NCBI RefSeq assembly: GCF_037042905.1
Contig: NC_087246.1
Location: 64,046,001 to 64,110,000, forward strand
Direction: 5' to 3'
DNA: 64,000 nucleotides
Source of the DNA: Lytechinus pictus
Taxonomy: Eukaryota
The position numbers and the translations under genes were made by a program. Below are positions 23,193 to 59,276 of the stretch, piece after piece. A model generated the notes under the pieces. The model was not told where the DNA came from. It searched no databases and saw only the letters and a program-made list of their open reading frames with translations. Position 1 is the first letter of the stretch. Every line of letters begins with the position of its first letter.

Positions 23193-24133
23193 CTGGTTTG
23201 CTTCCCACAAAATGCATGCAATCAGCAAAGGATTTCCTTGCTATTGTGACTTGATAATCCGGCTCCAACGGCAACCCTGGCAAGCGGAACCCAAGACATG
23301 TTATGAATAATTAGGGTTTTTGTGATCCGAGTTAGATGTGGAAGAAGTACAAATAGAATGTGAAATACTAGGAGATGTCTCCACGGAGGAGTGGGATTAG
23401 ATATTATCAACACACAGATAGAGTTTCTGAGACAATTCTGATTAATCATGATGAGGATGGTCGGGAGAAAATAAGGATAAATCACAGATGAGAGAGAGGG
23501 GGAACACATGGAAGAGGTGGTGGGGGGGGGGGTCATTACATCTCAAACCTAATTAAAATTGATCATAATGAGAATAGTAGGCAGAGAAGAGGGATAAAGC
23601 AAAGCACAAGATGGATTGAGCAAGGGAGGGATGGAGGGATGGGTGTGTGAAAGAGAGAAGAGAATTAGAAGGGGCAAGGGAAAATGTGCATGGGGTGGTA
23701 GTAGTGATGGGAAAAAATGTAAAAGCAGTGTGTGAGAGAGAGAGAGAGAGAGAGAGAAAGAAGGGGTTGCTGGGGGAAGAAAAACTCAGATATATTCATT
23801 AGAAAGACCAAATGAAATGAGGTGAATATGAAAGAAAGATAATTTAGATTTGATACACATACTTGCAGAAAAAAGATAATGGGATAAAGAACATAAATTT
23901 GAAAGCTTATGTACTGTAGAATGAAAAAAAATTTCAAAAACACATTTGAAAATTTTGTGGTATCCGCATGATCACATCATTAAATGAAGGCTGGATTCAT
24001 TTATTATAATTTTTTTTAATTAGATGTTGCCAAAGATTTTGTAGGATTTTGATGAATATATTTCCATTTCTACTATTGATCATGATGTGGAGTGAGTAAA
24101 CATGTAGGTGGGAGATAGAGAGAGGGATTTTGT

Positions 24134-24298
24134 AGTATGGGCCTATTTTCCAGAGTGTGGGTCAGAAGTGTGGGCCAAACTTTTGAAAGTGTGGGCCATT
24201 TTGCGAAGTATGGGCCAAATTCATGGGCCCATACTTCTACCCCTGAAGTGTGGGCCATTTTTGGCCATTTGGCCCAAACTCTAGGGGAAGTATGGGCC
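24134..24298 (+). repeat. Left subterminal array of AGTRTGGGCC motifs
   Basis: Forward copies at ~24134, 24154, 24167, 24188, 24207, 24247 and 24289. Inverted copies at ~24226 and ~24271. Confidence 0.9.
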
Positions 24299-24343
24299 AA
24301 AATTTCATGAGAAAGGGTCATTTACCAGTCTCGAATGCGAAAA

Positions 24344-24390
24344 TGAATAAATGAATGAAAGAATGAGTGACTGAATGAATGAATGAATGA
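24344..24390 (+). repeat. (GAAT)n microsatellite just inside the element's left end
   Basis: gaataaatgaatgaaagaatgagtgactgaatgaatgaatgaatga. Confidence 0.8.
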
Positions 24391-24533
24391 CGGTTCCTAT
24401 CTGAGAGAGCATGCGCAAACAATGTGCATGTTTTTCATTGCACGTGCTTATTTTGCATTAGCCAACTACAAGTACAGTACGGTATACGATTACGACTAAA
24501 CTAAGTTACGACCAGTTCCAAGCTCAAAAAATT

Positions 24534-24584
24534 ATGGCAGACCGAGACGACGACGACATCGAGGCTATGTTGGCTGATCCTCTT
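24534..24584 (+). CDS. YR exon 1 MADRDDDDIEAMLADPL
   Basis: ATG in attATGG context about 400 bp inside the left end, in a CpG-richer region. gtaagt donor, phase 0, matching exon 2. Confidence 0.7.
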
Positions 24585-30500: not shown

Positions 30501-33500
30501 CTCTCTTTTTCCTCTTACCCGCCTTCCCCTCTATCTTCTATTTTCGCCGCAATAATTCATTGCTTTAAAAATAACAATTAGTCTAGACTAAAGTTAGAGG
30601 AAATACAATCAAGAAACATTCTCACTCGCTATTCCAAATATTACATAAATTATTTCATATTTACTAACCGTTTTCTTTGCATTGGGCTTGAAGCATACCC
30701 TTCCGCAAAAAACAATTATTTTCTTGAGTGACAAATAACATCATGATTCCGGACGCTCGCCGGACGGGTGAAGATGTTCTTGATTAATGATGTAATTAAG
30801 AATTGGGGTGTTTTTTTCTTCATATGTCATATCGTGAGTAAATTCTAAATTTTTTCATATCAAGTCTGAACAAAGTTTGGAAATATTATTTAATAATTTG
30901 TGTGTGCTAACTAATCTTCATTTTTGTCTTATTAGCTGCATGTTCCATGGCTTTTTTTCCAATATTTTGCTAGTTCCTTAGCATTACACAAATAAAGTTT
31001 GTTACGATAATAGTCTTGTTTAAACACCAGCTCGGAATCTATATATGTCCACACCAGAGAAGTGTTAAAACAACACCAGTTTGGAATCAAACCAATGCTG
31101 TTTTGATACTTCTTGGTGTTGTATAAACACATATTTGGCGTGAGGCCAAAAACCAAACTGGTGTTGTTTAACATTTCTCTGGTGTGGACATATATAGATT
31201 CCGGGCTGGTGTTGAATCAACAATTCAGTTTTTGCAGTGTAGCCCGGCGACATGTGCACGCTTCCCTTGCTTGCCTTTCCAATACAGGAATTTTTCAGCA
31301 ACTATTTTCTGAACTTGCTACTAGATGGTATATTGGAGCACTTGTGGTCGCATGTGGATCTTCTGAATAATGAAGAGTTAATTTCTCTTATTTTTTAACC
31401 ATCAGGTGCAGGCACATGGGCACGATGTCACCAGAATGCTGGCTTATAGCATAAGGCCAAAAGTATACTTCAGCCACATGCAAAAAGGTGGGTCCTTTGA
31501 AGAATTGCTAAATGAATTACAAAGGAAGGAATCTGAGGAAAGCCAGCAAGGAGCAGGCCAAGGGATAGTTCCAAGGGATAGTGATGATGATCATGATGGC
31601 GATGATGGCGATGATGGTGGTGATTATGAAGAGGAAGAGGAACTACTATATGAATTACAAAGGAAGGAATCTGAGGAAAGTCAACAAGAAGCAGGCCAAG
31701 GGATAGTTCCAAGGGATAGTGATGATGATCATGATGGCGATGATGGTGATGACTATGAAGAAGAAGAGGAAGAAGAGGAAGAGGAACTACTATATGAATT
31801 ACAAAGGAAGGAATCTGAGGAAAGTCAACAAGAAGCAGGCCAAGGGATAGTTCCAAGGGATAGTGATGATGACGATGACGATGATGAAGAAGAACTCTGG
31901 ACATTGCAGGAGGAAGATGAAAGAGGATATTCCAGTGAAGATGGACAGGAAGAGGAAGCTGTGGAGGAAATTAAAAAAGGTCAGTACTCTGTTAATAATT
32001 CCTTAAATCATTAACCCTATTGTTTCTGAAACTTTATTAGTAAAAGCTTGTGTTCACATAACACCAATATTGAAGAGATGAGATTAGTAGCAATCGAAGG
32101 TTACTGATAATCCCCACTTAAAACATCCATTTATAAATGCTTTCAAGCCTCTATTATGTTTTGAGTGTCTGCATTCAGAATACATGAAATCGCACTCAAA
32201 TACAACTCGATAAACGATAACCCAAACTATACAGTCCAACCTCTTATTTGGCCTCCCTTTATCAGGATCTCTCTAATATCCGAATGCAATCTTCCTGTGA
32301 TTTTCCCTAGTTTACTCAAATAATTACTGGGAAAACAAAGATTTCAAGCATAATCATTATTACTAAAAAAAATGTGAATTATATATTATTCCGAACATCT
32401 GTAATAAACATTCAGATGAACTTTCATGTTGATAACATGCTTTCAGACACCTTAGACCCATGCAACTGCATGTATTAAACATAGAGTCTCCCATATTCAG
32501 GTAGAAATAGGATGCGAAGTGATGTGGGTGACATGAATTCACAGTATTACATGGTAGTACAAGGTGTCCAGTATCCAGTAGAACCATGCTCGTAGTGAGC
32601 ATGGCGAATTCGCTCAAGAAAACATGACCTGACAAAAAAAATGTGTAGAAGGTTAATTCATTATCTTTTGTTTGCCAGCAGATGGGAAAATTAATTGTGT
32701 TATACATTCAAAGGTATAGAATTAAGATTTTGAATAAATACTTACATGTATAATAATAATGTGTTTTCTGTTTATTTATGTACTAAGGAACGAAAAGGAA
32801 GCAAGGACAAGATGGGAAAAAGGCGTCCAAACCAGCAGGTAAACAATTTACACTGTATATTTGTACATGTATACAGCAATGATTTGAAATGTAGAGGATA
32901 TGTTCAATGATATCCTGCTGTCAGGTGCAACTTCTTGTACATAGGACAGTCAGTCCACCTTATTGAGCAACAAAGTGTCTTGGCATGCATTTGTGTTGCT
33001 GGGGTACGATAGCATGAATTCTATATAGTTCACAGTGGTAGGCAGTCTGCTTCACGAATGAGTCCGGAACTTTGGTGAGTGACTAGTCCCTGAAAGATCA
33101 GTCATGCAACACAACATCTTGGCCTTGTTGCATAGAACTCTATAACTAGAGATAAATTTTAACTGGAGATTTTTTATCATTATTTTGGGGGTTTTGTGTT
33201 CAAGTCAAAAGTCAAAATATGTAATTTTAGTCCTCAATTGTCACCAATTGTACCGGTTTTATGCAATGGCCCTTGACAGAATGTAAACATGTATGGACCC
33301 CAAGTCAATTCAATTCAGGTTTACAAAAAAACATGATTGACAGTCAAAACTGGTTTTAATGTGGATTGGAGATGAGTTTGTGAAATGGAATGGACCTGTA
33401 AATGCGAGCTGTAAACCGAAGATGACAGATGATCATACTCCTTCATGAAATATCAAGAAATATATATATATATCTAGTTTAATTTGAACCATTCCATCAT

Positions 33501-36500
33501 TTTCACTGTTGATATGACAAATAATCATGTTTTCAAATATTTCATACTGAATTATAGAATTGAAAGTTGTAGAATTTATCCTTTTTCAGAAGTTAGTGTG
33601 CCACTGATACACCCTCACTTCCCCTCATACTCCCCAACATACATGCACAAAATAGATATACTCTATTAATCATTTTATCCCTCGAGATTAGAAAAAAATA
33701 ATAATAGGCCTACACTGGTAGAAATTTTCCTATAAGAGTCTTGTAGGCCTATTTGGTTAAGGAAGACCTATACTCATGATTCATTTTTTAAAATGTCCTA
33801 CCTTTATATTCCCTATCCCTTTAGTTACATTTATTTAGTAATACTATTATTCACCCTACATGCAGATCGAATCGAGCGAAATTGCCCACTTTGTAATGTT
33901 GCGACAAGAACGCTTGCCCGGCATCTTCGCCGCAAGCATACACAGCTGAAGGAAAACGAGATCTGGCATTTCATATATCAAGCCAGAGAACGGTGAGTAT
34001 AGTTCTTTACTCACCCATTGCCTCCAAGATTATCTGAATTTCATAGGTTTAACACAGGGACTACCCAGTTCCTGTAACCAATAGATTAAACTCTTTGCAA
34101 GTTTTGTTTGTAATTTTGTACAAGTGGCATGAAAATCATTGACAGGAAGTGTCGCTGTTATTCCAGAACTGAACAATAAAAAAAATCAATATTCTATTTC
34201 ATTATGAAGAGAATTATAGGAGAATGGACAACTGAATGATGGAAATACAAAGCATTTTCACATTTGCACCTCATAATTGTGTTATAAAAGGTTATTGATA
34301 ATTGATAAGGTGTGATCATCTGCAGACTGCAGTTAGCAAATTTATACTTTCTAAAGATTGAAAATATGCATGGATATATTAAGTATTTGAAATCAAATTT
34401 CAAAATCCCTGCATTCTGGTCATATAAAACTCGGAATTGCTTTCATGAACTGGTATTAAACCAACATGTTATAAAATAAAAGCTATGGGAATCATGTGTT
34501 CAGAGAAATTCTTATTTCTTACAGTGTGAGTATATGATGTAATATACATGTGACATACTTCTTCTATTTTTTAGAGTCCCAATTCAGAGGAAGAAAACCA
34601 GAGATGAAGGACGAGAGAGAACTGGACAGAACTGTCCCCTTTGCGCCGCAAAAGGATTAACCAAACTCTCAGACCATATGAAGAGGAAACATAATGGCCA
34701 CACAGTGGAAAAACAAGGTACTTTGAATAATTTTGTCAAAGCAATCTCATGGGGTAAGCCATTTATCACATTTAAACTATAAAAAAAATCCAACAACAGA
34801 AAATCAGGCATAAGAATTTTATATTCTTGCAAAAGTGGATTTATTACACATTTGTAGTTGATCATATAGGAAAAGGTATGCAATTAGTCATAAAGGTAAT
34901 AATCTCCCCCCTGCACACATATACACTACCAGCATGATGTTTCTGGTGTAGTAATTTGTAATGGCTTATTGTGAATAAACATTGCAATGATTTATTTTGA
35001 AAAAGTAATATTTTCCACTTCGAGATTAAGAATCCTGTCCATCTGTGTTTCCAATAATGGCTTCATCAAAGTTTGTATTTTTGTCTCACCTGTGAAGCAG
35101 AGTGAGACTATTGGCGCCACTTTTCCGGCGGCGGCGTCAACACCAAATCTTAACCGAAGGTTAAGTTTTTGAAATGACAGCATAACTTAAAAAGTATATG
35201 GACCTAGTTCATGAAACTTGGCCATAAGGTTAATCAAGTATACTGAACATCCTACCTGAGTTTTGAGTCACATGACCAAGGTCAAAGGTCATTTAGGGTC
35301 AATGAACTTAGACCATGTTGAGGGAATCAACATCAAAATCTTAACCTACATGTAAGGTTAAGTTTTTGAAATGTCATCATAACTTAAAAAGTATATGGAC
35401 CTAGTTCATGAAACTTGAACATAAGATTAATCAATTATTGCTGAACATCCTGCTTGAGTTTTGAGTCACATGACCAAGGTCAAAGGTCATTTAGGGTCAA
35501 TTAACTTTGGCCAAATAGGGGGTATATGTTGAATTACCATCATAGCTTAGAAAGTTTATTGGTCTAGTTCATAAAACTTGGACATAAGAGTAATCAAGAT
35601 TCACTGAACATCCTTTGCGCATTTCAGGTCACATGACCAAGGTCAAAGGTCAATTAACTTTGGCCATGTGGGGGGTATCTGTTGAATTATCATTATAACT
35701 TTGTATTTTTATGGATCTGATTCATGAAACTTGGACATAAGAGTAACCAAGTATCACTGAACATCTTGTTTAAATTTAGACCCCAGGGTTTAGATTCTAG
35801 ACCACTAACGTCAGACTCTAGATCTAAGAGTCTAGATTCTAGATCTAGAAAAGTCTATATCTAGAGTCTAGCTCTAGAGCTCTCACGTTATGGTGGTGGT
35901 CTCCAAGTCTGTTAACGATTGGAGTTAAGATTTTAATATGAATTCTAGATCTATCTATTTATTTCATAAATTCTTTCAGTTGCATAATGTTTTATTTTGT
36001 TAGACCTCTAGATCTAGACTCTAGATCTATATTCCAGATCCAGACTAAAGTCCTATCTCATAAAAATTTAAAAGAAATAGATCTAGAGTAGACCTAGGCC
36101 TATAGGTCTAGATCTAGGCCTAACGTAGGTCTCTACAAATCTATCTGCGTCGTTGTGCCGCCGCTTAAGGTTTTTCCACAAACTATTTTAATCCGTAGAT
36201 CTACATAATTATGGTAGTCCTATATACTTAGACTCTACCTTTGTCATCACGAAAATTGGCCGATAGTGATTGCAATGGTCAAGATTGACCACCAATGGCA
36301 TTTCCCAGTCGGCGACCTCCCTGTCTCGGGTGCGCGGTACGATGTACGATTCCTTTGTCTATCGCATATACTTGACCATAATACTGAAAATAAAATAATT
36401 GCCAGAGTAGATCAGGCTTTAATTATTCCGGCAAAGATACCAATACCACTGAGTGAAAACAACTTCTCCAAGAACCACTGTACTGAAAAGTGACCTTTGT

Positions 36501-45500: not shown

Positions 45501-48500
45501 TGGTTTGAATCAATGTAATGATGACCAACTTTTCAATTTAAAAGTGGCCTTGGCATTGCAAGGCTGATTCATCACAACATTTAAATTAAGCTATCTTGAA
45601 AACTATTCTACCTAAGTCAGGAATGCATACCTTCCAAATGATCTCTCCGCTGAATTTAAATATTGGAATGTATAGAGAACCATTTTGCTGAAGGCCTAGG
45701 GATTGATCTAGGAATACATCAAGATATTTATAGGAGGTTACTCTTTCCAGTATAGTGTTATACATTCAAACAATCCACGGATGGTTACAATATTTGTAAT
45801 AACAATTCAAAGATTAGATGTCAATCCAAATATTAGATGAAATTATGTAAATAATCGACTAGAAATACAGAGGACATATTAACAGATCTCAAATACTGAA
45901 CATGTAGTCGAATATCGTGTTAACCCTATAAAAACAAATTTCACTATAGTACCAAGGAACATATATCTCCACTATACTACCAAGGAACATCAATATTATC
46001 AAAGAACTCATGATCACAAGACATCCTCATCATTCGGCCGAGTTGAAGTCATTGATGAACAACATTTCCATTACTTCAAGTTTTATGATGAGTTGCGTAA
46101 ACTAACGCCATCATAGATCACAGTCAGATAAACTTGTAAACGCACCATATTTCCTTGCCCATACTGTTGAAGCCAAGCTCCGAGTTTACCGAGGCATGGA
46201 GGGCATATGGCCTGCAGGAAGGGGTCTAGTGGAATATAAATTTTATACAACATATATTAAAAATACATACAGCATTAAAATTGCAAAGAACTCGCTGTTC
46301 TTCATTGTTATTGGAGTAATTTAAATTGGTCTATAATTGGACATGTCGTCCCTTTCTCCCCGTCCTCTCTCTGTATACAGGGGTAACTCTTGAACGTTTC
46401 CATTCCACAGGTATTTTGCCAGAATCTATAGAAAGATTGAATGAGTGCATAAGATGAGAACATATGACTGAGGATGCTCTTTTCAGTAATAAAAGCAAAT
46501 TTCACTTTACTACCAAGGAACATATATCTCCACTAAACTACCAAGGAACATCAATATTATCAAAGAACTCATGATCACAAGACATCCTCATCATTCGGCC
46601 GAGTTGAAGTCATTGATAAAGCCAAGCTCCGAGTTTATCTTGTTTTATCTTGTTTCGTATAAATTTCTCATCGACTTGTCAAGTTTGAATTGTGACTCTG
46701 ACCGATTAAGCATCTTTCTTTGAACTGATGTATGATCAATCCAAGATACACAGTTGATACCAGCTGTCGAAAAAAAATTCATTGAATTTTTCTGCAAGAA
46801 CTCCTTGATCGATTTCTTGTGTACCATTACCACTCCTAATAACATAAGTCTTCTTGTTTGAGAGTGTGAGTATTTTGAGAATTTTACATAGCTTCTTTGG
46901 ATTATTCTTTTTTTGCATTATCTGTTCCTGATAGTAACTCTTAAGTCATCCTCAAATTATTCACAAAATTTCTCATACTTCTGAATTGTTTCCATGTATC
47001 TCTATTTCTAGTCTTTTCTGCCATTTCTTTCAATTGGTTTATTTCATCTATTTATTTTGCATTTTATACACGGTAAGCAATTCAGTTATACACGATAAAA
47101 ACATTAACAATGAATAAAAAGCTGGTTTACTATTGGGCCCTGTTAATTAAAATACATGTACATACAAATTATAATGATAAATATATACAGTACATAATAT
47201 ACAAAATATACAAGAAATAAATCTTTAAAAATCCCAACCCTCTGTGCTTTCATCAGATTCATCAAAAACACACAGACACACACACTCCATCACATACTAG
47301 GGCACATTCTGCAGACTCGTTACGTGTAACGTATAATAATTAATTTAACATTTATGATGTTGTGGATAGCGTCCAAAATCATCTGTTACCCATGGGGTTT
47401 TGGCCGATCTTGCTCTCATAGAAACAATAGGAGCATGTTTGTCACACACCTTTGATAACAATTCTTTCCAAACTTGCCATGCGTCTTCAACATTAACACT
47501 TTGTAGAAAGGGTTCCTAATCAACCTCTTGCAGATCGCCAATAAAAGCATCTATGTCAAACTTTTTGAAAGACCGAATAGTAATCATTCTGTGAAGCAAA
47601 GTTGGTCTATAAAGTTTCCTCACTACATACACAAAGCTGTGGTCGCTTAACCCATTGGATACCACTCTACTTTCTTTGACATTTAGTGGGTTATTAGTTA
47701 ACAAAATATTAAGAAGACTTTGGCTATTTCCAGTTATCTGGGTAAGAGATTCGATTACCTGTTAAAGGTTTGTTGGATACACAGTTGTTTTATAAACTGA
47801 GCCTTTCTAACATCAAGCGTATTGTAATTGAGATCTCCTAAGACATATACTTCTATTCTCATAGCCTGTGAGACTGTAGTCTCAATTAAGTCCTGATATT
47901 CAACATTGGATTGTGGGGGCTGATAAAAAATTCCTATCAAATTTGTGTTTTGCAGCTTGAGTTCAATCCATCTAGATTCAATATGTGAGCTCTCTAGGTC
48001 CACTCTTCGACATTAATTGAGCTCGTCAGCAATGACCATTGCTACGCCTCCCCCATACCTATTCCTATCTTTTCTCTCAATAACAAAACCATACAAATCA
48101 ATGTGATTCCTTACCATTCTGAATATCACTTATTTTTTGTAAAGGCAGCTGGATCAGTTGTAAAGACAAAACCAAACCCCAAAATAGGATGCCATGAATG
48201 GTCATGGTGGTTTGGATCAGGAGAAAAGACATATTCTTTATCTTTTAATTCCAGGTGCATGATCACAAGACGTCGTCTTCATTTGGTAGAGCTGAAATTG
48301 TGGTTGAAGACCAGCATTTCAATTATTTCCAGCTATATGACGAGTTGCGTAAACTCACACCAAAGAGCTCACCATCAGATAATCTTGTAAATGCGCCATA
48401 CTTTCTGGGCCATAATGGCAAGGCTGTGTTGAAACCAAGCTGCGAGTTAACTGAGGCTTGGCGAGCATGTGGGCTGCAGGGAGGGGTCTCTACGAGAAGC

Positions 48501-51500
48501 ATCCGAAAGACAGTTGCCTCAGCGGTAAGTAAGATTCATCCTTGACACAGAGAATGAAAATAGGTGCGCTGTACATATACGTTTGCAATGAACGGCAGAA
48601 TTGCCTGAACAAAATGCCATTTACACCACCACCCTTACCCCTCCCCCTCCACCAACTCTTATATTTTTTTTCTTTTGTTGCAGTTTATTTTTTGATGGAA
48701 TATGTGACATGCATTTGATAAAACAGAATACTGCTAAAGCAATTCAATTTCAGCCATTGAGAGCAAATATAAGCATATTTATATATGAACCATGACGTGA
48801 AAAGAGTCAAATTGCAGTTCTCCTGTACACAAAATCACTTTTTGGAGTGATTTTTGGTCTGACATGTATGAATAAATAATTATCTAACTTTAGAACCATA
48901 CCCCGGGCATCACAAATTTGATGGCAAAATTTGTAGGAAACTTGTAGGAAAAGTCATGAAAAATCGTGGCGAGAGCTTTGTGCCTTCCAGAGCACTTGGG
49001 CGAAATCTGCCAATTGGTGTGTCAAACCATGGTAGTCAAACCATCAAAGCAAGCTTTAATAAACTGCATTTGGAAGTAATGTATAAATGAGTACAGTATT
49101 GAAGGAAGGCTTGTAATGGGAAGTTTGAGGTGTACCAAGGCATTGTATGTGAAAGTTATTTCTCTCAATTTTGTTGTTATGTTGCAGGCACGGGATGAGA
49201 TGTCTGCGGAGTGGCGCAAGAAGGTGGCAACCTTCATGTGTCATTCCGTAGAAACTGCCGAGCATTACTACACGGCAAGATTTAAGACTTCCCAAAACAT
49301 CGAATGCCGCGATAAGGTGTGGAGTCTTCTTCTTGGACAGGTATGTATCCTTCATTATGCAATAATTATCAAATCACATGTGTTATTGCTACCCTAATAT
49401 TACATGTTTTCACAATTTTTCTTTTTTCAGATGACTCTTGCTTTAAGAAACTTGCAACTGCCAAATAAAAAAAAAAAACATTAATTTCTTATCTAACCCT
49501 TAAATTTCATTTTACTTCTTAATCTTATCCAATCCCAGTAATATGTGCAATATTTTGCGCATTATTAGCACTGGACCAATGTGTTATAGATCATGTGGAA
49601 CCTTTCTCGGTGGAGCTTACTCAAAGACAAAAGAACACAAATGAATTAACAACCTAACTACCAGTAGTTGATTTTGCTATTCGGTAATTGTACCAACTAC
49701 AAATTCAATCAAACAATTTTATCCTCCATATGCCTCCATTGTACTATCAGTGAGCAAAGTACACATTCTTTTAATTGGGGTCAGTACATATTTTAACCTG
49801 CGTATATATTATGCTTCAGATTTGATATCTATTCATAAATTAAATCCTACATGTTTCCTTAAAATCAACAGCAGCCAGAAATGCAGGAGCAGACTGCTCC
49901 TGAACATCCTGTAGATGTCCATGTAGAGGTCCATGCTGGACCATCAACGAGTCAGACGACCGCCCTAAAAAGTGCAGGCATGAAGAAGAGGAAGGCCCAG
50001 GGAAATACACAAGCCAACATCCCCTCTGAGTCTGCTCCTGAGACCTGTGGCCATGAGGAAGGTCACGAGCTTTCTCAACAAAAGGAAGTAAAAAAGGTTT
50101 GTCACTAATGCTACATGAAGTTTATGTATTTCATATCAGTATGTTTTTTTTTAATAAGACCATGCCTTATGAAGTTTTTTTCTTTTTCTTTTTTAATTAT
50201 TATTTTTTATTTAAGTAAGGTAACTCTCATAGAGAGTAAAATATAACATTTCAAATTATAAATTTCTTACTACATATAAATCAGTATTTGTAAAATTATG
50301 TTTAAACATAGCAAAGAAATCCTTGTTTTCTGTGTTTTTGTTGCTCTTAGATTATGAATACATCAATTTGACAAAAGACAAACTTGTTGGTTTTTGCAAA
50401 TAAACTCTTTATTTGTAAATGATAAATTTATTTTGATATAAGTACAGAAATAAAACATGCATATATATATATATATATATTTGTATTAAAGAAATTGTAT
50501 ATGTCACTAATTCATTGAAAATATATTCATTCACTTAAAATATTATTTATGATACCCGATATATTTGAATATGCATATTACAGAGAATATCTGAAAATAC
50601 ATTATTCCAACATGTTGACTTTTGAGCAAAGCTCATTCTAGAGCTGCTAATATAAGGATCCATAATTATCAACTAAAATTAAATTCATAAGCATTTACTT
50701 TCTAACTTTCTCTGATATTAATTTGATGTCTCCAATTGCGATGAAATCACACCTTTGAGGAAAGAACATACTCATCTAATTGTTTCCCCTTCACAATTTT
50801 TGTTAAAGTTTTACATCAGTAATAAAATACTGAAAATAAAAGATTTATATTTTATTTTCTACTATGTTTGTACCTACAGCCAAGATCCCGCTTCGTACTA
50901 ACATCAGTGGAGCTTGAGGACATGAAGAGGACAATCATGGCTGTCATGAATCGGACATGCTCAGTAGTCAAAAAACCAAAATTCAGGGATATAGTGAGTA
51001 CAACATTAATTTATCAATACTCAAATGTTATTCACAATATTTCTAATAATTATCCTATATAGTGTGCAATGTGCGTATTCTCTCTAAACCAAATGCTACT
51101 TTATAAACTGGAATTGGTGCATGTTTTTTTTTCACAATGTTTTTTAAGTCACAATGGCATGAGAAATTATCACTTCAATGTATGTCTGTTGTGTTGAATA
51201 CTTTAGCAGACTTGCATGGCTTGTGCAATCTAATTCAGTTTGATTTCACTTGTACGTTTGAAGTGTGATGTGATTTTGATAGCCCCCTCTAAAAGAAAAA
51301 TGACAGATTTAAATCAGTTCCGGAGACTTGTGAATTAGGGAGAGAAAAAAACTGAACTCTTTGGAGTTTTTTGTATTATGTTTCAAAATCACAAAGTTCT
51401 AATAATCGCCTATTTATTTTTTCAATTCTTTTCCCTTTGAAATCGTATGTGAACTCAATAAGGTTAATGGTTACTTCTGTTGGATAGAAACTGAGTGAAA

Positions 51501-53124
51501 GATATATTATTTTCATGCCTTGAGCAGACCTGCCAACTAGTACTTCAGTAATTTCTATTTAAATAGGAGAAGAATAATGATTATCACTAGCAAACTACTG
51601 ATTTCAGAAATTAGTGTCTGTGATATAATATACTACACTTCTGAGAATTACTGATTTTCATCCATCAAAGTACTGACAGGCTTTTACAAAATTTGGCAGC
51701 TGTACTTGAGCATGAAAAGGTAAAAATGAACAATTTGAAGTAACACACACAGACACCAAAAAACCAACATGAATTAAATAAATCAAGCCACCAATCATGC
51801 CGATTGGTAAATTAAGCACACACAGAATTAATAAAATACAGAGCCTGAAGTTTTTTGCAAAGTCAGGTTGCATTACAATACAATGACACAAGTGTGAGAT
51901 TCCTTAGCCTTCTGGGTGGATGTAGACATATGATAATGTGAATATGAACATTCACAATTATTGTCACATCAAATTGTCAAGAAGTTAGCTCACAAAATGA
52001 ATTTCTTTTACCCTAAAAGGCACAAATGAAGTGATGCCTGGTGATGCATTTTATTATTTTCACAGGGCTTGTGGTTCAAACCTTGTTGGTTCCAGGCTGT
52101 TATGAACACATTTGAAGATACATAGGTCAGACAGTATCTATAGATTTTGAGATATGCAACTCTATCAATATTTTACAGTGATTGTTCAAATGAAAACATT
52201 CATGGTAAAATTATTTTTTTTAATGTATTCTTCTTTTTACCTGTTCTCTTTTATTAAGTTTGGAAATGCACCTGACATTCCCCATTGTTGTGCAAAAACA
52301 TTTGCACATTTCTGTACTTTCCTTTACTATTGACTAATTTGTTTATGCTGTTTTAATTTTGATTGTGTATCCCATTTTTTTGTCAGACCAACGAGGCTTA
52401 TAAAATAATAATGCCTAGTACGAGAGATAAGATTACTAGTCAACAATTTTATGACAAGGCCAGAAACTTGGGTCTGCGAGAAGGTAAGCTAAATCTAATG
52501 GCATCACTGCTAGTATATATACATGTGTAAGTCTCTCTATTAGAAGATCCTTGTATGGATATTCCTTTCAACATTTTTTAGTGATATAAAGGCTCTATGA
52601 CAGGCAAAGGATGTTGACTCCTATTAATGTGTACTAATTTTCAATCACTTATTATTTAAAGTGATAAAAAATATTTTAATTATTTTTAAATGACCTAAGC
52701 CCCCCCCCCAAAAAAAAGTACAGTATTGTGAACAGAGAACTCTTCCTGGCAACTGGATAGATAATAAAAATAGTGTTGCATGTTTTCATACAGTGGACCA
52801 TTACATATTATATTTTAAGATATACATTTATACAACTTGAGATAGGAATGCTCAGTAGTTTTGTAACTTGCAAGGAAGATTATGAATAAGAAGATATGTT
52901 GAATGAAAGGTCAAAGTCAAAGGAATAAGATATTGTTCCCACATGTAGTAAATGTTGACTTCTGAGCAATATTTGGAAACCCCCTAATAAGTTTAATTCC
53001 TTCTTGATCAATTCTGTCTAAGTTAAAAGAGGTAAAAGTTAATCAAACTTACTTGAAAATAGAAATAATATATTCAAAATTGATGATAAGCACTTTGAAT
53101 TTGTCTTTTACAGAGATCTGGTGA
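24534..53124 (+). CDS. Spliced tyrosine recombinase (phage-integrase fold) with two C2H2-type zinc fingers, 16 exons, 913 aa
   Basis: Exons 24534-24584, 31406-31979, 32788-32838, 33866-33992, 34575-34717, 36740-37045, 38584-38734, 40161-40387, 42442-42513, 43598-43767, 48255-48524, 49188-49340, 49872-50096, 50880-50993, 52387-52483 and 53114-53124. They sum to 2742 nt, and all introns are GT-AG with matching phases. Catalytic motifs: GAPRSCVLTNMKVGE (R), HDHKT (K), STRSIRK (R), FMCHSVETAEHYY (H, Y). Confidence 0.85.
25745..26548 (+). mobile_element. Possible LTR (solo or from a truncated element) in YR intron 1
   Basis: Begins TGTCA and ends TGACA, with AATAAA ~95 nt before the end, followed by tttgg. 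No second LTR and no clean TSD seen. Confidence 0.35.
29563..29652 (+). other. tRNA-derived Pol III promoter cassette (A and B boxes) within a repeat; not an intact tRNA
   Basis: tggctcaatgg (A box) at 29570, ggttcgagtcc (B box) at 29614 and a T-run at 29643. The acceptor and anticodon stems do not pair well. Confidence 0.55.
31021..31241. mobile_element. Partial palindromic MITE with a CACTG-type end
   Basis: Inverted arms aacaccagc.cggaatctatatatgtccacaccagaga / tctctggtgtggacatatatagattccgggctggtgtt; right end tttttgcagtgtag. Confidence 0.65.
31406..31979 (+). CDS. YR exon 2, acidic region with three tandem repeats
   Basis: Pyrimidine tract plus cag acceptor. ELQRKESEESQQxAGQGIVPRDSDDD occurs three times. 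gtcagt donor. Confidence 0.8.
32788..32838 (+). CDS. YR exon 3 GTKRKQGQDGKKASKPA (basic, NLS-like)
   Basis: 51 nt, aag/gtaaac boundaries, phase 1-1. Confidence 0.7.
33866..33992 (+). CDS. YR exon 4, zinc finger 1 (CPLC...LARHLRRKH)
   Basis: cag/gtgagt boundaries; CxxC...HxxxxH. Confidence 0.85.
34575..34717 (+). CDS. YR exon 5, zinc finger 2 (CPLC...LSDHMKRKH)
   Basis: tag/gtact boundaries, phase 2 to 1. Not listed in the + ORF track because it has no start codon. Confidence 0.85.
35078..35769 (+). mobile_element. 5' part of a HINE-like element (same family as 12370-13316)
   Basis: tttttgtctcacctg... followed by tandem ggtcaaaggtca units; reverse complement of the 12370 copy. Confidence 0.75.
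36740..37045 (+). CDS. YR exon 6, Ser/Pro-rich linker (symmetric phase 1-1, skippable)
   Basis: cag/gtaagt boundaries, 306 nt open frame. Confidence 0.6.
37439..38245. mobile_element. Two adjacent TTAA-type MITEs sharing one TTAA (37818-37821)
   Basis: ttaa|agtgattgtttaac...gttaaaccatacct|ttaa|aggacaagtccacccc...; the second element is truncated. Confidence 0.65.
38250..38416 (+). mobile_element. 3' part of a HINE-like element
   Basis: ...gcactgctgctatattgaatcgcgtgatgcaggtgagacggccagagg.att.cacttgtt matches the reverse complement of 12370-12540. Confidence 0.75.
38584..38734 (+). CDS. YR exon 7, start of putative core-binding domain
   Basis: tag/gtata boundaries; SKDGIFERYLQFTSFYCKEKTAEQHKSQLEKI. 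Confidence 0.8.
39001..39632 (-). mobile_element. 3' end of a CR1/L2-clade LINE
   Basis: NTRQSARGDLVLPKCRTEYSKNALCYDGPSLYNNLPTEIRSQTSFASFK is a typical ORF2 C-terminus, followed by a 3' UTR and an (aaat)-type tail. Confidence 0.75.
40161..40387 (+). CDS. YR exon 8, putative core-binding (SAM-like) helices
   Basis: YQPKTVGKYLTSVAKLV resembles the P.T...YL.S motif of integrase core-binding domains. Confidence 0.85.
42442..42513 (+). CDS. YR exon 9 EELLSKEDLQMFYNTLYKQACDVK
   Basis: cag/gtttg boundaries. Resembles the L-S/T-x-E-E/D helix that opens YR catalytic domains. Confidence 0.8.
43598..43767 (+). CDS. YR exon 10, box I with catalytic Arg (codon 43690-43692)
   Basis: RDFLLLTAVLSGAPRSCVLTNMKVGE. 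Confidence 0.9.
44123..45390 (-). mobile_element. Frameshifted LINE ORF2 5' part (AP endonuclease), Rex1/Babar-like
   Basis: IANCRSLSNKFDEL...LLCFTETW, GGG.CVYINERWC, YLPREF, VLGDFN, TRGNRTLD and GNSDH motifs across three ORFs. Confidence 0.85.
46009..46227 (+). pseudogene. Decayed paralogous copy of YR exon 11
   Basis: HDHKTSSSFGRVEVI-DEQHFHYFKFYDELRKLTP...LVNAPYFLAH...LKPSSEFTEAWRAYGLQEGV, with a stop and indels and no good acceptor. Confidence 0.9.
46497..46638 (+). pseudogene. Second, internally deleted duplicate of the decayed exon-11 copy plus its upstream flank
   Basis: Near-identical to 45936-46056, then jumps to aagccaagctccgagttta (46169-46187). Confidence 0.85.
46645..48100 (-). 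mobile_element. Degraded CR1/L2-clade LINE fragment (AP endonuclease and linker)
   Basis: GFVIERKDRNRYGGGVA, IGIFYQPP, VLGDLN, GLSDH, RSFKKFD and AEKFNEFF motifs in broken frames. Confidence 0.8.
48255..48524 (+). CDS. YR exon 11, catalytic Lys and box II Arg
   Basis: VHDHKTSSSFGRAEIV...STRSIRKTVASA; cag/gtaagt boundaries. Confidence 0.9.
49188..49340 (+). CDS. YR exon 12, catalytic His and Tyr
   Basis: RKKVATFMCHSVETAEHYY; cag/gtatgt boundaries. Confidence 0.9.
49872..50096 (+). CDS. YR exon 13, disordered linker with KKRK
   Basis: NAGNAG acceptor, 225 nt, phase 0-0. Confidence 0.7.
50880..50993 (+). CDS. YR exon 14 PRSRFVLTSVELEDMKRTIM...
   Basis: cag/gtgagt boundaries, 114 nt. Confidence 0.75.
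52387..52483 (+). CDS. YR exon 15 TNEAYK...TSQQFYDKARNLGLRE
   Basis: cag/gtaagc boundaries, in frame with exon 14. Confidence 0.7.
53114..53124 (+). CDS. YR exon 16 coding end (E)IW*
   Basis: ttgtcttttacag acceptor and TGA at 53122-53124. It is short, so least certain. Confidence 0.5.
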
Positions 53125-53281
53125 AATGTGACAAGATCTGCCGCAAGTGTTGGAAGTCAATGAGCCCACATCAAGCATTACGTCTTACCCCCGTTTGGGA
53201 ACGGACCGCAGATCAGATTGCAAACTGCGGTATTTTACCCCATTTTGCATTTGAAAATCTAAAACATAATTTCCAAGCCCT

Positions 53282-53425
53282 GGGGGTCTTTTCATAAAGC
53301 TGTTCGTAAGTTAAGAGCGACTTTAACAACGACTGGTGATTATCGCTAATGGTTTGTACCATTTACCGCAAGACATGATCACTAATCGCTCTTAACTTAC
53401 GAACAGCTTTATGAAACATCCGCCT
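53282..53425. mobile_element. Short palindromic MITE
   Basis: ttcataaagctgttcgtaagttaagagcga / tcgctcttaacttacgaacagctttatgaa inverted arms. Confidence 0.7.
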
Positions 53426-53875
53426 GATCAACCCCGCTTGGCCAGGTAATCCCCACAGGCCAGATTATGAGCGTTGAGCCAAGAACGAAATGATAAACAA
53501 CAGCTGTGCTATTACGTAAGTCTTCTCTGCCTGTAGAAGGACCTTCGGAATTAAATAATTGTATTCGATATTTAATCACGTTTTCAAAGGCATATTGTAT
53601 TCAGAAAGTTAATGCTAGCCCATTTTCAATTTCGAACGAAGAAAATCAACCTTGAAATAAGGAAAGTAAGTGAATAAAAAATGGCGACATGTTTTCCAGG
53701 ACCGCACTCGGGCTGTTGTGTTATCTTCGGACCGAGGTAAAGAAATAGGTGTTTTGATACTTACATTGCATGCTTTGGGCAGTAGGGTTTTCGTACTTGA
53801 AGAGAATTCATTGAGAAAATCCGGGGTATAGTGTTATCAAAAGGAGGTTTTTCGTCATGAGTTTGAGAACATTGA

Positions 53876-54289
53876 GGCCCGAATTTTCAAAGGTGGTTTT
53901 GAAAACCCACGGTTGAGTCCATGGTTTATGCAGATTTCCTGTTTAAATTACGCTTAATTTAGCGCGTATTGGGCGTGTGTATAAAAAATGTTCAATGCTG
54001 ATGCGCGCATTTGTCACAATGCGCCAAATTGACGCCTGTTACCATGGTTAGATACGCTATTTTATTCATAAGTCCACTGTTTGAAGAGTGGACTCATGAA
54101 TAAAATAGCGTATCTAACCATGGTAACAGGCGTCAATTTGGCGCATTGTGACAAATGCGCGCATCAGCATTGAACATTTTTTATACACACGCCCAATACG
54201 CGCTAAATTAAGCATAATTTAAACAGGAAATCTGCATAAACCATGGACTCAACCGTGGGTTTTCAAAACCACCCTTGTGAATTCGGGCC
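53876..54289. mobile_element. Near-perfect ~414-bp foldback MITE with TGA target duplication (PIF/Harbinger-like)
   Basis: tga|ggcccgaatt...aattcgggcc|tga. The ~200-bp arms are almost perfectly complementary around a ~10-nt loop near 54078-54087. Confidence 0.9.
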
Positions 54290-55691
54290 TGAAGGTTACC
54301 GCCCTATAGAAGTATACTTAGTGTTTTGTACATAAAAACCTTTGATTATTGCAGTTCCTCTGATTGTTTTATTTCACAAACAAGTTATTTGGATTGTGAT
54401 TGCATCTGATTGATTTCAAATAGAAGATTTCCATTTCTGCATATTGCATTAATGAGTCACTGAGCATGAATGGTTAAATCCAAGCAAAATATTAATTTTC
54501 CCATATCCAAGATGATGATTAAATCATTGGGATGCCTTTATTTTGGTTTAGCTAGAGGTAAGGTTACCAGATTATTATTAGATACCAGTGGAACCTATTA
54601 CATGTAAAGCCAGAGGTGTCAAGGAATGATATGATCGTGTACTCTTATATTTGCTATTTTTCAGTTCTTTGAATACACGCTCGTATTTTCTGATGCTTAG
54701 AAGAAAAGTATACAATGCAAGGTATTATACCCATGAAAATGAGCATTTGATATACAGGTCAATTAAATGGACACCTTAAAATATTATGTGGCCATGCGTT
54801 TTGAGTGAGGCCCATTTCCATTACAACTCGAATTTTCCTCCAAAATCGCACTGTTTCATAAAATTGCATTTGTTTTCTTATGTATGACATCCTATACCCA
54901 TAAAAGTATATATATACTTGAAAGGAAATTATCTGAGGAATTCAAAAATGCAATCAGAAAAGGCATACGGTAATGACATAAAAAGTTTTAGGTTAAAATA
55001 TGTGGAAAACTGTGAAAAAAAAATACTTCCCAATAAATCTGAGAATCAGATAAACTCTACACCCTATAGGGAAATAACATGCATATTTCAACTCTTTAGA
55101 GTGAGACCTTTCCAGTGATATATAACTTGTTAGGGATAACTCTACCAAAATAATTGGGCACGATCATCTGTATCAATGTGTATCAATGCTTGATTTACCC
55201 CTAAAATATTATGTAGTCTTGCCTTTAGTTGCATAAATACACTTGCAAACACTAAGCAGTATATTATAATATATTTACTGTGGTTATTATGATATTATGA
55301 ATAAAAAATGATTTCATTTGACTCAAATCGTGGGATTTGTCACCTCTTGGCTCAAAGACCAATGGACCACAGGTTGACAAACTGAGAGTCAAGTTTAACA
55401 TATAAATACAGAAAAAATGTGAATGCACAATGAAAAGTTCTTATTACTGCTTTAGCTTATTCAAACTTAGTGTGAACATAAACAACTAACATGTTATAAA
55501 TAAATCTATACGCCTGGTAAAAATACTTTATGTTATTCTATAGTGTTATATTTTAAATATATCCTCTTAACATTCTGCAGGACATGGTCTCTTGGTACTG
55601 GGTCAATTGAATGTCAATGCACAAAACACATTGTATGGGTACAATTGCCTCTGTTTAGTGTGATCTTGTACCAGTTTCATTCTCAAGTAGT

Positions 55692-56081
55692 TTGTTTGAT
55701 AATTTGGAATAATATTTTCTGAACACTTTTGTGCCAGCCAAATATGTTTAATATACTGTTTCACAGACACAGTGTGATGTATCATTAAGAAAAAAGGTAA
55801 ATAGCATCAGATGAGGGCTTTATTGCTACAAACAAGTTTTCATTGATTAAAATTGCATTAAAAGGTGTGTTTGCTTTCTGTTATGTTGTTTGATAATTTG
55901 GAATAATATTTTCTGAACACTTTTGTGCCAGCCAAATATGTTTAATATACTGTTTCACAGACACAGTGTGATGTATCATTAAGAAAAAAGGTAAATAGCA
56001 TCAGATGAGGGCTTTATTGCTACAAACAAGTTTTCATTGATTAAAATTGCATTAAAAGGTGTGTTTGCTTTCTGTTATGTT
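55692..56081 (+). repeat. Exact tandem duplication, ~194-bp unit
   Basis: ttgtttgataatttggaataat...ttgctttctgttatgtt occurs twice head to tail. Confidence 0.9.
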
Positions 56082-58065
56082 ACCGGAATAATCTGAAGAT
56101 TCTGACACATCAAAGTTATCACTGTCAGTCTACGCTGTCAAAATTAAAACCATGAGGTCATAATTAACAATTGATTGATTTATCTCTGAAGTCTTTATTA
56201 GTTTGTGCTTTCTTTTTGAAATTTTTGCAGCTTCTAAATTTTATTGAAGGTGTAACCCACAACTATATTTTTCTCCTCATTTCCTATACATCAGTCACAA
56301 TTTCAATTGTGTTAATTTCATGATTTACATCAATTAATTATAGTAATTAGCTTGATTACGTATCCTTTAAACTTAAAAGTTCAAATTTGACCCACTTATG
56401 ATTGAAGAATAAGCCAGTGAGCTAATAATATATAGCTCTTACAATATTAAGATTCAACCTTAAAGGGTGCATGCCTGCTCCATGTCTCTGTAGAAATGTG
56501 AGTTCTAGTGAACTCCTATATGAAAGGCCATTAATTGTACTGTCTGATTTTTAAATAGTTATTAATAAAAGACCCATCTGCTAGATGTTAACAGATTCTG
56601 ATTCAGTGCTTGTCCCTCTGACTGTGTGACCTCCCTATCGAACCCACTTGTCCTAACCAGTGATGACACGACATTTGCTTCTGTGACACTTGCTCTGGGC
56701 TTTTTTTAGTCTAAGATAAAGGGTTAGGGTTACAATAGGGTTTTATGTTGGGCATAGTGTTAAATCCAGGGTTGAAGTTAGTTATTTGGTTAGTGTGAGG
56801 AATTTAAAGCGGAGCAATTGTCGCCAGAGTAAATGTCATGGAACCATCGTAATCGGCCCCATTTCCACACAAGCAGTACACATCTCCCCTCCCTCCCCCA
56901 TACATTATAAATGTAAATATTCTGGGAACTTGTGATGCAAATGTCACATTTCGCATCTCTTGCAGGCATGTTTGTGTGTGTGTGTGTTTTTCATGTGTGT
57001 GTGCATATTTGTTCTTAAGCTAAGGCCCGTATCACAGTGGTTAACGATTGATCCCTAATTTCAAAGAAACAATTCTGATTGATTTGATTTAGCAATTAAT
57101 CGCTAACATTTGTGTTACAGCGCCCAGGTCTAATAATGGAATAGGGATAATTAAAGTTGCCTTAAAGAGAAAGATAATCAGATGTCCAGTTTTTTTATCG
57201 CTTGTTTTAAGAAAAAAAATCCTATTGACTAAAAACTTTCTGTAGATTAACCATGTAACATGAAAACTTTCAAATCGTCATAAAGTCTACATCTCTTGTT
57301 TTAAAACATTTGTGAAATGATGGGCATTTCTGACTTTCAGTTGACAATTACGTCACTTTGGTGTGTAATTGAGATTGTTGTATGTTTGTGTGTTTAGGGG
57401 TCTTAGGGTATGTTTACACATGTGTTGATGCATACATGTTACTTCATGGCCGAATATTCCCGGGGGGATGGGGTATGTGTTTTTGATACATCCGCGTCCC
57501 TTACCTCATAAAAGTCACCTAACGAGGATTTTAGCAAGGGATAATTTTACACCCTATTCAGAGCGGCAAACTCTAAATCACACATTTTCACACCCTTAAA
57601 GAGGATTTCTAATCTAGTAATTTTTGGGGTATTCATTTTTATGGCATTTACAGCTTCCCAAAAGCCGACCCCAAAAGAAAAAAAAAGAAAAAAAGGCCAA
57701 ATAAAAATAATTGAGAAAAGGAACCTCTTTATATTCCTTAAAGTGTAAAAAATAACCAGGATAAAATAAAATCTTTGAAAAGATGAAAGTTTTGAAACAA
57801 TTTTCTTTGACTAGGTCTGGAATCAAACAGAAATTTGGCAAGGGGCGATTTTCCCCACTCAGGCAAAATTTTCCCGCATTCCAATCTCCCTCGCTATTTT
57901 ATATCCTTTTCGTCAATGACACACCCCCTCCCCTCCCAGGGTGAATATTTAAATGAAATACTGCACACATTCATTAAAAATACAAAAAGAAACATACTAT
58001 AGGGTAAATGTTTAATCCGGAGTATTAATCAAACAAAATGTACTTTAATGAACCCAACTAAAATT

Positions 58066-59042
58066 GTGTCCCATACTTCCATTCACAGTCGAAAATCTGG
58101 CACACACTTCCGTCCAAATGGTTTAACCATGGGGGCGCCCTTGTTCCCATTTTACATCCTTCAAAACTATCATCCAAACAAGGCATTTGGGGGAGAATTT
58201 GATCGAAATTTGTCATTAATTTCATAATATAGATTCTAAAGATGGAATTCAAATCATTTTATGACGAATTTTGTTTAACATTTGTCCACAAACTTAATCT
58301 GAAAAGGTGGCCCACACTTCCCTACCCATAGTTTTCGTGTACTTCAGTAAGCAAAAACCACAAAAAACAAAAAAATATTGCGACAAATTTAGAGAGTTTC
58401 AGAAACAAGTAGCGCTGATTCTGGAAGATATTTGATATATCTACCCCTTCCAACTAAATTCTCAACCCTCTAATATTAATTTTCGTTTTCTGAATGGGTT
58501 GAAATTTGTAAAATGTGGCCCACACTCCCTAAAATGTAATTTCAGGATTTTCCGTTTTTCTCATTAAAATTACGGTTTGGGTAGAAAAAAAGAATGTAGT
58601 ATTCAAGAGTAATGTATAAATTATCTGTTGAGCATTTTTTGAATTTTTCAAATCGAACAGAAAATAAAAATTGAAATCCAATTTGTAAGGCTGAATTACC
58701 ATTATCCGTTATTCTCTCTTTTCAATACTATATGGGGCAGGTCTTGTTAACGTCTTTCATATATAAGGGGAAAGTTTCTCAAACTGACGAAAAGAGGAGT
58801 AGCGAATTGGAATTCCGTGGAAGAATTAAGAATTTCAGTATTTGAGGCGATAAAGCATCAAATTTTGTTCAAAAATATAAAATTTCAAAGTTATACTGTG
58901 CAAAACAAACGAGTAATTTGCAATACCCACACTTCCACCCCGTGTACAAAACAAATGGGCGGATATAACGCGCGAGAATGGGAAGTTTTTCATGAGATTG
59001 TTATCATTTCTCAAAGTTAGCGTGTCCCATACTTCTTTTGCC
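58066..59042 (-). repeat. Right subterminal dispersed array of the GAAGTRTGGG motif (inverted relative to left end)
   Basis: tcccatacttcc ~58069, ggcacacacttcc ~58099, ggcccacacttcc ~58309, ggcccacactccc ~58517, cccacacttcc ~58926 and tcccatacttcttttgcc 59025-59042. Confidence 0.8.
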
Positions 59043-59276
59043 AGAGGGGGAGAGAGGGAGGGAGAGAGAGAGAAATAGAAGGGAAAGAGAGACATTTATT
59101 TCTAATCTCATTATAGAATATGATTACCTATTTTGGAAGCAATGAAGCATCAAGCATGTCATACTATGGTCTGGTAAGCACATGATAAAAAGGTCACCCA
59201 CTTATTCATGTTTTGATGAATTACACAGGTCAAAGCAAGGAAAATGACTTTTGATCTATACTGCATGATCATATTA

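Follow-up and report, generated by a model that had tools for sequence, protein, structure and literature searches.

An intron-rich 34.9-kb mobile unit of Lytechinus pictus is probably an autonomous Crypton-type tyrosine-recombinase transposon

Introduction

Crypton DNA transposons were reportedly described by Goodwin et al. in 2003. Eukaryotic transposons that carry a recombinase as their only gene are rare and poorly understood. Here we analyse 64,000 nucleotides of the sea urchin Lytechinus pictus (contig NC_087246.1, positions 64,046,001 to 64,110,000 of the forward strand), a stretch referred to as the window throughout. It holds a mobile DNA unit of 34.9 kb with an intact, 14-intron tyrosine recombinase gene, which we consider probably an autonomous Crypton-type transposon with the recombinase as its only gene. 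An earlier note, made from the letters of the window alone, had proposed a tyrosine-recombinase transposon at this position.

Activity of a recombinase-only transposon has been directly seen only in Chlamydomonas, where CryptonF-1_cRei is active and its CACCG terminus pairs with a CAYCG target (PMC9977147). Animal Cryptons have been described without terminal repeats (Kojima & Jurka 2011, PMC3212892), and intron-rich Crypton genes are treated as probably inactive or domesticated (PMC13465315). CryptonV, to go by the description of Kapitonov & Jurka (2012, Repbase Reports) cited in PMC8869645, comprises target-site-specific Cryptons held in Repbase and reported from cnidarians, some families being microsatellite-specific.

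The L. pictus unit shares several properties with the Cryptons. A tyrosine recombinase is the only gene in both, neither carries reverse transcriptase (RT), long terminal repeats or true terminal inverted repeats (TIRs), a short (4-6 bp) terminal sequence appears to resemble the target, and the presumed route is circle excision followed by site-specific integration. It differs in that the protein is unmatched by DUF3504 and barely matched by PF00589, in its two zinc fingers, its 14 introns and the arrays of a 10-bp motif at both ends, and in a length about ten times the few kb that the earlier note gave as usual. A further likeness, to CryptonV as described, lies in the insertion specific to microsatellites; because microsatellite-specific CryptonV families are by that description already in Repbase, target specificity alone is not new.

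Other recombinase-bearing elements are less close. Starships are likewise large DNA elements with a tyrosine recombinase near one end, defined ends and a target preference, but the L. pictus unit has no DUF3435 and no host-beneficial cargo, consists in bulk of introns and nested repeats, and resides in an animal; a Starship identity was rejected on the lack of DUF3435 and of cargo genes in the open reading frames (ORFs) scanned. DIRS and Ngaro are eukaryotic mobile elements encoding a tyrosine recombinase as well, but depend on RT and RNase H and carry terminal repeats that are split or inverted, whereas no sense RT is present here. This identity was also rejected, RT occurring only as antisense fragments of a non-LTR retrotransposon (LINE) and the introns being kept in all copies. 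In contrast to lambda Int and the Tn916/Tn1549 integrases, the recombinase is encoded in a eukaryotic element by an intron-containing gene and has different N-terminal DNA-binding modules; relative to bacterial tyrosine-recombinase elements, there is no Xis-like gene and the target is a microsatellite.

Results and discussion

The unit has been copied whole between chromosomes

The mobile unit extends over about 24124-59046 of the window and was found in three copies on different chromosomes, C2 (the window copy), C14 and C5. Searches of the genome with the ends located the same ends on C14 and C5, separated by approximately 35 kb and arranged in matching order and orientation. Full alignments to the window copy cover 34,991 and 34,955 bases at 99.90% and 99.92% identity. 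Similarity among these three young copies spans window positions 24110/24112 to 59094/59060, beyond which they diverge completely. Every exon is identical across the three full copies and all 14 introns are retained; the approximately 20 internal differences amount to a handful over 35 kb once a single 3-kb nested-LINE stretch is set aside. As the introns are retained in every copy, an RNA intermediate is excluded. The 34.9-kb unit is a real mobile DNA unit, and the near-identical copies show that at least two very recent copying events took in its full length.

On C1 lies a fourth, old copy with internal deletions (7.6 kb, 68-92% identity), which has exons 10-12 only and is bounded by the same two termini. 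The C5 flank recurs on an unplaced contig, C279, which is probably a haplotig. Each flank of the window copy occurs once in the assembly, and flank searches consequently revealed no empty haplotig there. ORF lists of the flanks gave no information on the WDR89 host gene named in the earlier note. The earlier note had set against its transposon a single-copy gene syntenic across relatives. We found instead that both ends co-occur at four loci with different flanks and again in Strongylocentrotus purpuratus, and that the gene is multi-copy and not syntenic. Two exon-encoded peptides used as queries against the genome matched the three copies, the haplotig, the decayed C1 copy and distant paralogues of 31-32% identity; no compact intact relative was found with these two peptides. 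The distant paralogues of exon 10 (31-32% amino acid identity) lie at C9:26575044-26575313 and C17:10973067-10973333 and may represent other families of the same recombinase lineage.

Sixteen of the approximately 20 substitutions relative to the window copy cluster in 44478-47476, where C14 and C5 share the alternative base. The pattern suggests either gene conversion from another LINE copy or that the window copy is the outgroup.

Common termini, motif arrays and a GA-rich target

The regions bounding the window copy are as follows.

24109-24126, no strand: left GA-rich target flank, its last bases being GAGAGGGA; upstream the young copies differ, and in all of them GAGAGGGA directly precedes TTTTGTAG
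24127-24298, + strand: left terminus TTTTGTAG... with nine AGTRTGGGMC motifs (seven on +, two on -) about 20 bp apart (motif scan with shuffle control)
58068-59046, - strand: right subterminal region with five inverted AGTRTGGGMC motifs, about 480 bp of conserved non-coding sequence and the terminus ..TTTTGCCAGAG (motif scan, S. purpuratus alignment)
59047-59095, no strand: right GA-rich target flank; after GCCAGAG the young copies read GGGGAGAGAG, GAGGAGAGAG and AGGGAGAGAG, then diverge

All insertions, including that of S. purpuratus, have the same or homologous termini, TTTTGTAG...TTTTGCCAGAG; across the species the left terminus reads TTTTGTAG or TTTGGTAG and the right ..GCCAGAG or ..GCCCGGAG. 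In the three young copies ...GAGAGGGA is followed by TTTTGTAGTATGGGCC at the left junction, and ...GTCCCATACTTCTTTTGCCAGAG by GGGGAGAGAG, GAGGAGAGAG or AGGGAGAGAG at the right. The C1 copy has (GA)n followed by TTTTGTAG on one side and TTTTGCCAGAG followed by GGGGAGAGAG on the other, and its left flank, like that of the S. purpuratus copy, ends in GAGAGAGA. All five independent insertions (four in L. pictus, one in S. purpuratus) lie in GA-rich tracts, demonstrating a target preference. The element may itself carry the last 3-8 nt of the left flank. Both junctions contain AGAG(G), so that the direct repeat shared by the ends is AGAG(G) rather than a fixed AGAGGG. This short sequence appears to resemble the GA-rich target, as expected of a Crypton terminus, yet inverted subterminal arrays, which are not described for Cryptons, are present as well.

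The arrays comprise nine AGTRTGGGMC motifs at 24134-24298 and five inverted ones at 58068-59033. The window contains 20 matches in total where 6.3 +/- 2.2 would be expected, and a count of 20 was not attained in any of 100 shuffles. The matching end structures described by the earlier note are thus borne out, in the form of motif arrays at both ends and a boundary shared by the copies. By analogy, the arrays may have a role like that of the arm-type sites used by lambda and Tn916-like integrases, which they resemble.

We considered whether the locus could instead be a host or domesticated recombinase-derived gene, copied through segmental duplication or ectopic recombination between GA tracts. 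Its 14 introns, at least one at a position shared with teleosts, are a host-gene-like trait, and neither expression nor evidence of excision was seen. However, the four insertions, each on a chromosome of its own, end at identical nucleotides within unrelated, single-copy flanks, and the same termini bound the S. purpuratus relative, which occupies the antisense strand of an unrelated PARN-like gene. Exact ends are not shared by segmental duplications, and here none of the flanking sequence was duplicated along with the unit; segmental duplication was rejected on these grounds, and we regard an origin as a host gene as very improbable.

An intact 15-exon recombinase gene

To reconstruct the gene, stop-free segments of the + strand were chained and scored on splice sites and phase. 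The resulting model has 15 GT-AG exons on the + strand, running from the ATG at 24534 to the TGA at 53122-53124 over a span of 28.6 kb. The spliced frame is open (2,727 nt, encoding 908 aa), every border reads AG/GT with compatible phases, and 14 introns are present. Coding sequence makes up 7.8% of the 34.9-kb unit.

24299-24533, + strand: presumed promoter and 5' untranslated region including an (AATG)n tract, a role suggested by reading the sequence
24534-24584, + strand: exon 1, aa 1-17, beginning at the ATG (frame and phase; S. purpuratus has an equivalent short first exon followed by gtaagt)
31406-31979, + strand: exon 2, aa 18-209, conserved N-terminal peptide and acidic 138-nt repeats (aa 7-58 match residues 6-56 of the homologue P0002)
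33866-33992, + strand: exon 3, first CxxC..HxxxxH zinc finger (a fish profile aligns to aa 210-297)
34575-34753, + strand: exon 4, second zinc finger (CPLCAAKG..KH, close to the fish motif CPCCxKKG..RLDKHLQ..H)
36740-37045, + strand: exon 5, Ser/Pro-rich linker (open frame and phase only; the least supported exon)
38584-38734, + strand: exon 6, first half of the N-terminal (core-binding-like) domain (open frame and phase; no direct homology match)
40161-40387, + strand: exon 7, second half of the N-terminal domain (fish profile from aa 462, across the exon 7/8 junction)
42442-42513, + strand: exon 8 (colinear with P0002)
43598-43767, + strand: exon 9, catalytic Arg I, R594 (homology to P0002, catalytic motif)
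48255-48524, + strand: exon 10, Lys K624 and box II, R700 and R703 (homology to P0002, catalytic motifs)
49188-49340, + strand: exon 11, His H728 and nucleophile Tyr Y736/Y737 (homology to P0002; the exon 10/11 intron is positioned as in the fish relative)
49872-50096, + strand: exon 12, variable linker (frame and phase, P0002 alignment)
50880-50993, + strand: exon 13, conserved C-terminal domain (68% identity to the S. purpuratus exon)
52387-52483, + strand: exon 14, conserved C-terminal domain (homology to P0002)
53114-53124, + strand: exon 15, end of a split codon, the last two full codons and TGA (the model ends ..REEIW, P0002 ..RDGLW)

The earlier note had described 16 exons and 913 aa. 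Its start, stop, 28.6-kb span, GT-AG borders and phases all stand, while the count gives way to 15 exons and 908 aa; no sixteenth exon was found when the stop-free + strand segments were chained by splice site and phase. It had also placed the gene start roughly 400 bp inside a boundary, and the ATG is indeed 407 bp inside the left boundary as fixed by the alignment of copies. Among the ORFs scanned on the two strands, none pointed to a further gene.

The encoded protein has a tyrosine-recombinase fold

From its N-terminus, which is acidic, the 908-aa protein runs through two C2H2-like fingers, a core-binding-like N-domain and a tyrosine-recombinase catalytic domain to a conserved C-terminal tail. 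The catalytic motifs already noticed in the spliced frame are present: R594 (SGAPRS), K624 (HDHKT), R703 (SIRKT), H728 (MCHS) and Y736/Y737, with box II reading RSIR rather than HxxR and R700 occupying the canonical His position.

Pfam searches with single exons of the window gene gave no match. PF00589 matched 3 of 18 family members at a sub-threshold E of about 1e-3, DUF3504 (PF12012) matched neither P0002 at E <= 1 nor any of the 18 members at E <= 0.1, and DUF3435 matched neither P0002 nor the 18 members. An assignment to the CryptonA/DUF3504 lineage was rejected, there being no PF12012 match at the thresholds used. Profile searches against PDB sequences also gave no match. A first structural model built from 9 sequences was too poor (pLDDT 47) and was replaced by an AlphaFold model of P0002 residues 150-385 from 18 sequences, including window exons 9-11, with pLDDT 81.4 and pTM 0.83. 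Foldseek comparison of this modelled catalytic domain returned top matches that were all tyrosine recombinases or type IB topoisomerases, in agreement with the integrase fold anticipated in the earlier note, and in the ESM Atlas P0002 has TM 0.65-0.76 to XerC/XerD clusters. The recombinase fold is thereby established. Neighbours of the P0002 catalytic domain in the ESM Atlas also include two fusion-like clusters, one of chordate SET-domain proteins (TM 0.72) and one cnidarian with a Myb domain (TM 0.76), which may be recombinase-derived fusions.

The earlier note had further claimed that annotation based on ORFs and repeat libraries would fragment the element and take it for an uncharacterised host gene. 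The lack of a DUF3504 match, the sub-threshold PF00589 match and the label 'uncharacterized' on the S. purpuratus homologue agree with this, and gene and repeat annotation would overlook the element.

A relative in Strongylocentrotus purpuratus retains the gene between the same ends

An exhaustive search with exon 10 matched 7 proteins among 1.84 billion representatives. The best match, XP_030840177.1 of S. purpuratus (504 aa, labelled 'uncharacterized'), is colinear with residues 538-908 of the model, to the last residue, at 47.5% identity, and also aligns to residues 7-58. Its gene lies in an element with (GA)n before TTTGGTAGTATGGGAC at the left junction and (GA)n after GTCCCACACTTTCTCGCCCGGAGAG at the right, 12.3 kb apart (L045 9511-21770). 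The motif arrays recur there, conserved in order and spacing; the left one opens with spacings of 21, 13 and 20 bp, compared with 20, 13 and 21 bp in the window. At the right end, approximately 480 bp of non-coding sequence can be aligned between the species, with 66.7% nucleotide identity to L045 21329-21703. The borders of exons 10, 11, 13 and 14 coincide, with the S. purpuratus introns being much shorter. The 12.3-kb element contains no RT or DDE ORF, and its strand bears no further gene call. Only the recombinase gene stays with these ends in both species.

These observations bear on the possibility that the unit is a non-autonomous passenger moved by an enzyme whose gene lies elsewhere, for example a hAT-like DDE transposase that recognises the subterminal motifs, with the recombinase gene only cargo. 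Inverted subterminal short repeats are typical of cut-and-paste elements, and with boundaries set at TTTTGTAG...TTTTGCCA an 8-bp GAGAGGGA repeat is perfect around the C5 copy. With those same boundaries, however, the fixed 8-bp duplication is off by one base and by two bases in the remaining young copies, despite 99.9% identity of the elements, and the extreme termini are not inverted repeats. Gene and ends remain linked in two species at a protein identity of only 47.5%, no DDE ORF occurs in either element, and copies are very few, with no MITE-like derivatives bearing these ends. We consider passenger status quite unlikely, and a cut-and-paste DDE (hAT-like) identity for the element itself was rejected for want of TIRs and of a DDE ORF and for the imperfect 8-bp duplication in two of three young copies.

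Teleost relatives share the protein architecture and an intron position

Relatives of the gene occur in teleosts, being multi-copy in Knipowitschia and present in Micropterus, Siganus, Larimichthys, Epinephelus and others. The teleost protein has two CxxC..HxxxxH fingers, an N-domain and a catalytic domain. A profile of five teleost relatives aligned to model residues 462-843 (E 5.7e-33), spanning the exon 7/8 junction, and to residues 210-297, which cover both fingers in exons 3 and 4. The fish gene is multi-exon, and a break at P0014 residues 491/492 matches the exon 10/11 border exactly. The protein lineage is invisible to current domain models, and the gene shares at least one intron position with fish. 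Word-indexed protein searches added teleost paralogues only, and no cnidarian protein was among the sequence matches to the recombinase. A language-model look-up of the fish N-domain returned only sub-threshold leads (QRICH1-like, Phage_int_SAM_1 and ALOG), all of which are N-terminal domains of recombinases or their derivatives.

Locus L054 5800-11030 of Knipowitschia caucasica and the teleost proteins P0012-P0031 represent these multi-copy, multi-exon relatives. Two predicted proteins of Serrasalmus rhombeus (P0001, P0003) consist of 7-12 tandem repeats of an exon-10-like unit (DKHKT...LIRTS), suggesting that a single recombinase exon has been tandemly amplified in that genome.

Classification and a proposed mechanism

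Several Crypton traits are found at this locus: catalytic residues, DNA-only movement without RT or RNase H, and multiple copies with identical ends. A Crypton-type account is the simplest, because the recombinase is the sole gene kept with the ends, the introns are retained, there is no clean duplication, and the short terminal sequence appears to resemble the target. Such a combination fits the model put forward for Cryptons (PMC3212892) and seen operating in Chlamydomonas (PMC9977147). The element is best filed as Crypton-type, and appears new in four features, namely its protein lineage, the arrays shared across species, the 14 introns and the recent move of 35 kb. The very recent copying of a 14-intron element contrasts with the view of intron-rich Crypton genes as probably inactive or domesticated (PMC13465315).

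In the mechanism that we propose, the recombinase would itself perform the move. The protein would bind the AGTRTGGGMC arrays at both ends and bring the ends together, and strand exchange would take place within the short AGAG(G) at both junctions. A circle would be excised and released, with a junction predicted to read ..TTTTGCC-AGAG-GGATTTTGTAG.., and would re-integrate by the same reaction into the GAGAG-type core of a (GA)n-like microsatellite, producing no target-site duplication.

We tentatively suggest, with rather less confidence than we place in the Crypton-type assignment, that the sea urchin and teleost genes could belong to a previously undescribed lineage of active animal tyrosine-recombinase transposons, combining fingers, core-binding and recombinase domains with ancient introns, arm-type arrays and strict (GA)n targeting. 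If this is true, the lineage would offer a natural eukaryotic site-specific integrase whose own copies prove carriage of at least 35 kb. An enzyme that places tens of kb into a short, common and mostly harmless motif would be of interest as a tool, should activity be confirmed; for such an experiment the genome supplies exact ends, a repeated motif predicted to be bound, a GA-rich target and an intact gene.

Expression and points that weigh against an autonomous Crypton-type element

The fold, the co-occurrence of the ends and the copy number had been named beforehand as results that could overturn the transposon reading, and all three favoured it. A number of observations nevertheless weigh against our interpretation. 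Reads from three RNA-seq runs, about 8 million sampled from each, were mapped to window 31900-37100, and none covered exons 3-5 or the 3' end of exon 2. At so modest a depth, and with the tissues unspecified, this counts as missing evidence. With respect to the junction check suggested by the earlier note, exons 2 (3' end) to 5 gave no support for the junctions, and no read contradicted them. In run X1 one 154-nt contig aligned at 33862-33991, almost exactly exon 3. It was not counted as support, because X1 may be low-coverage DNA (100 M letters for an 811-Mb genome, with intronic pieces also present).

Exons 5 and 6 are supported by open frame and phase alone. Since Arg takes the place of the first box II His in this protein, and Asn does so in fish, recombinase activity is an assumption. 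The finger and N-domain exons were searched for in the S. purpuratus element and are absent, so that these parts may be non-essential or the S. purpuratus copy defective; that element also has no linker exons, yet keeps both ends and an open catalytic and C-terminal frame. The subterminal motif arrays contrast with the published animal Cryptons, which are described as lacking terminal repeats (PMC3212892). An 8-bp duplication would fit 2 of 5 insertions exactly and would contain mismatches in two of the young three, and the case against it falls short of strict because the flanks are GA-rich. Finally, we saw no empty allele, no excision footprint and no circular junction; for the circle, read mapping spanned at most 6 kb whereas the ends are 35 kb apart.

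It could also be that the family is a true recombinase family whose 35-kb copies are no longer self-mobile, being either too bloated or silenced to make protein, or moved in trans by a compact master outside the assembly. The lack of RNA-seq reads on exons 2-5 and the long introns full of repeats would fit this. On the other hand, the coding sequence is intact and identical in three copies, differences outside one 3-kb stretch are few, and the two-peptide genome searches revealed no compact intact relative. We judge such a loss of mobility unlikely, and favour an element that is autonomous.

Intron growth and nested repeats account for the size of the unit

The 35-kb size is best explained by intron growth and nested repeats, including antisense LINE fragments, a palindrome with 214-nt arms and tandem repeats. 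This supports the growth through introns and nested transposable elements put forward in the earlier note: S. purpuratus has the same exon borders within 12.3 kb, and the coding share here is small. Since the element moves as DNA, introns and nested sequence travel along.

44123-48003, - strand: antisense LINE fragments in intron 9, together with an exon-10-like pseudo-exon (weak endonuclease-RT Pfam match)

These antisense fragments are the only RT-related sequence, in line with the earlier statement that RT and RNase H are absent apart from LINE fragments. Between them lies the exon-10-like pseudo-exon (45883-46321), with approximately 74% amino acid identity over its first 36 residues, and every full copy has it.

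Downstream of the last exon, a palindrome at 53868-54297 has two 214-nt arms, 96% complementary and separated by a 2-nt loop, in all three copies, and the 3' non-coding part contains a perfect tandem duplication at 55692-56081 (194 bp x 2, 100% identity). Intron 4 harbours a nested repeat at 35032-35900 with 153-bp tandem units at 35375-35765. This repeat is the sole covered part of 31900-37100, reaching about 400-740x RNA depth in the peak bins 35032-35379 and lower depth beyond in the three runs. Internal joints and variants are numerous, and the repeat has the appearance of a dispersed family that is strongly transcribed.

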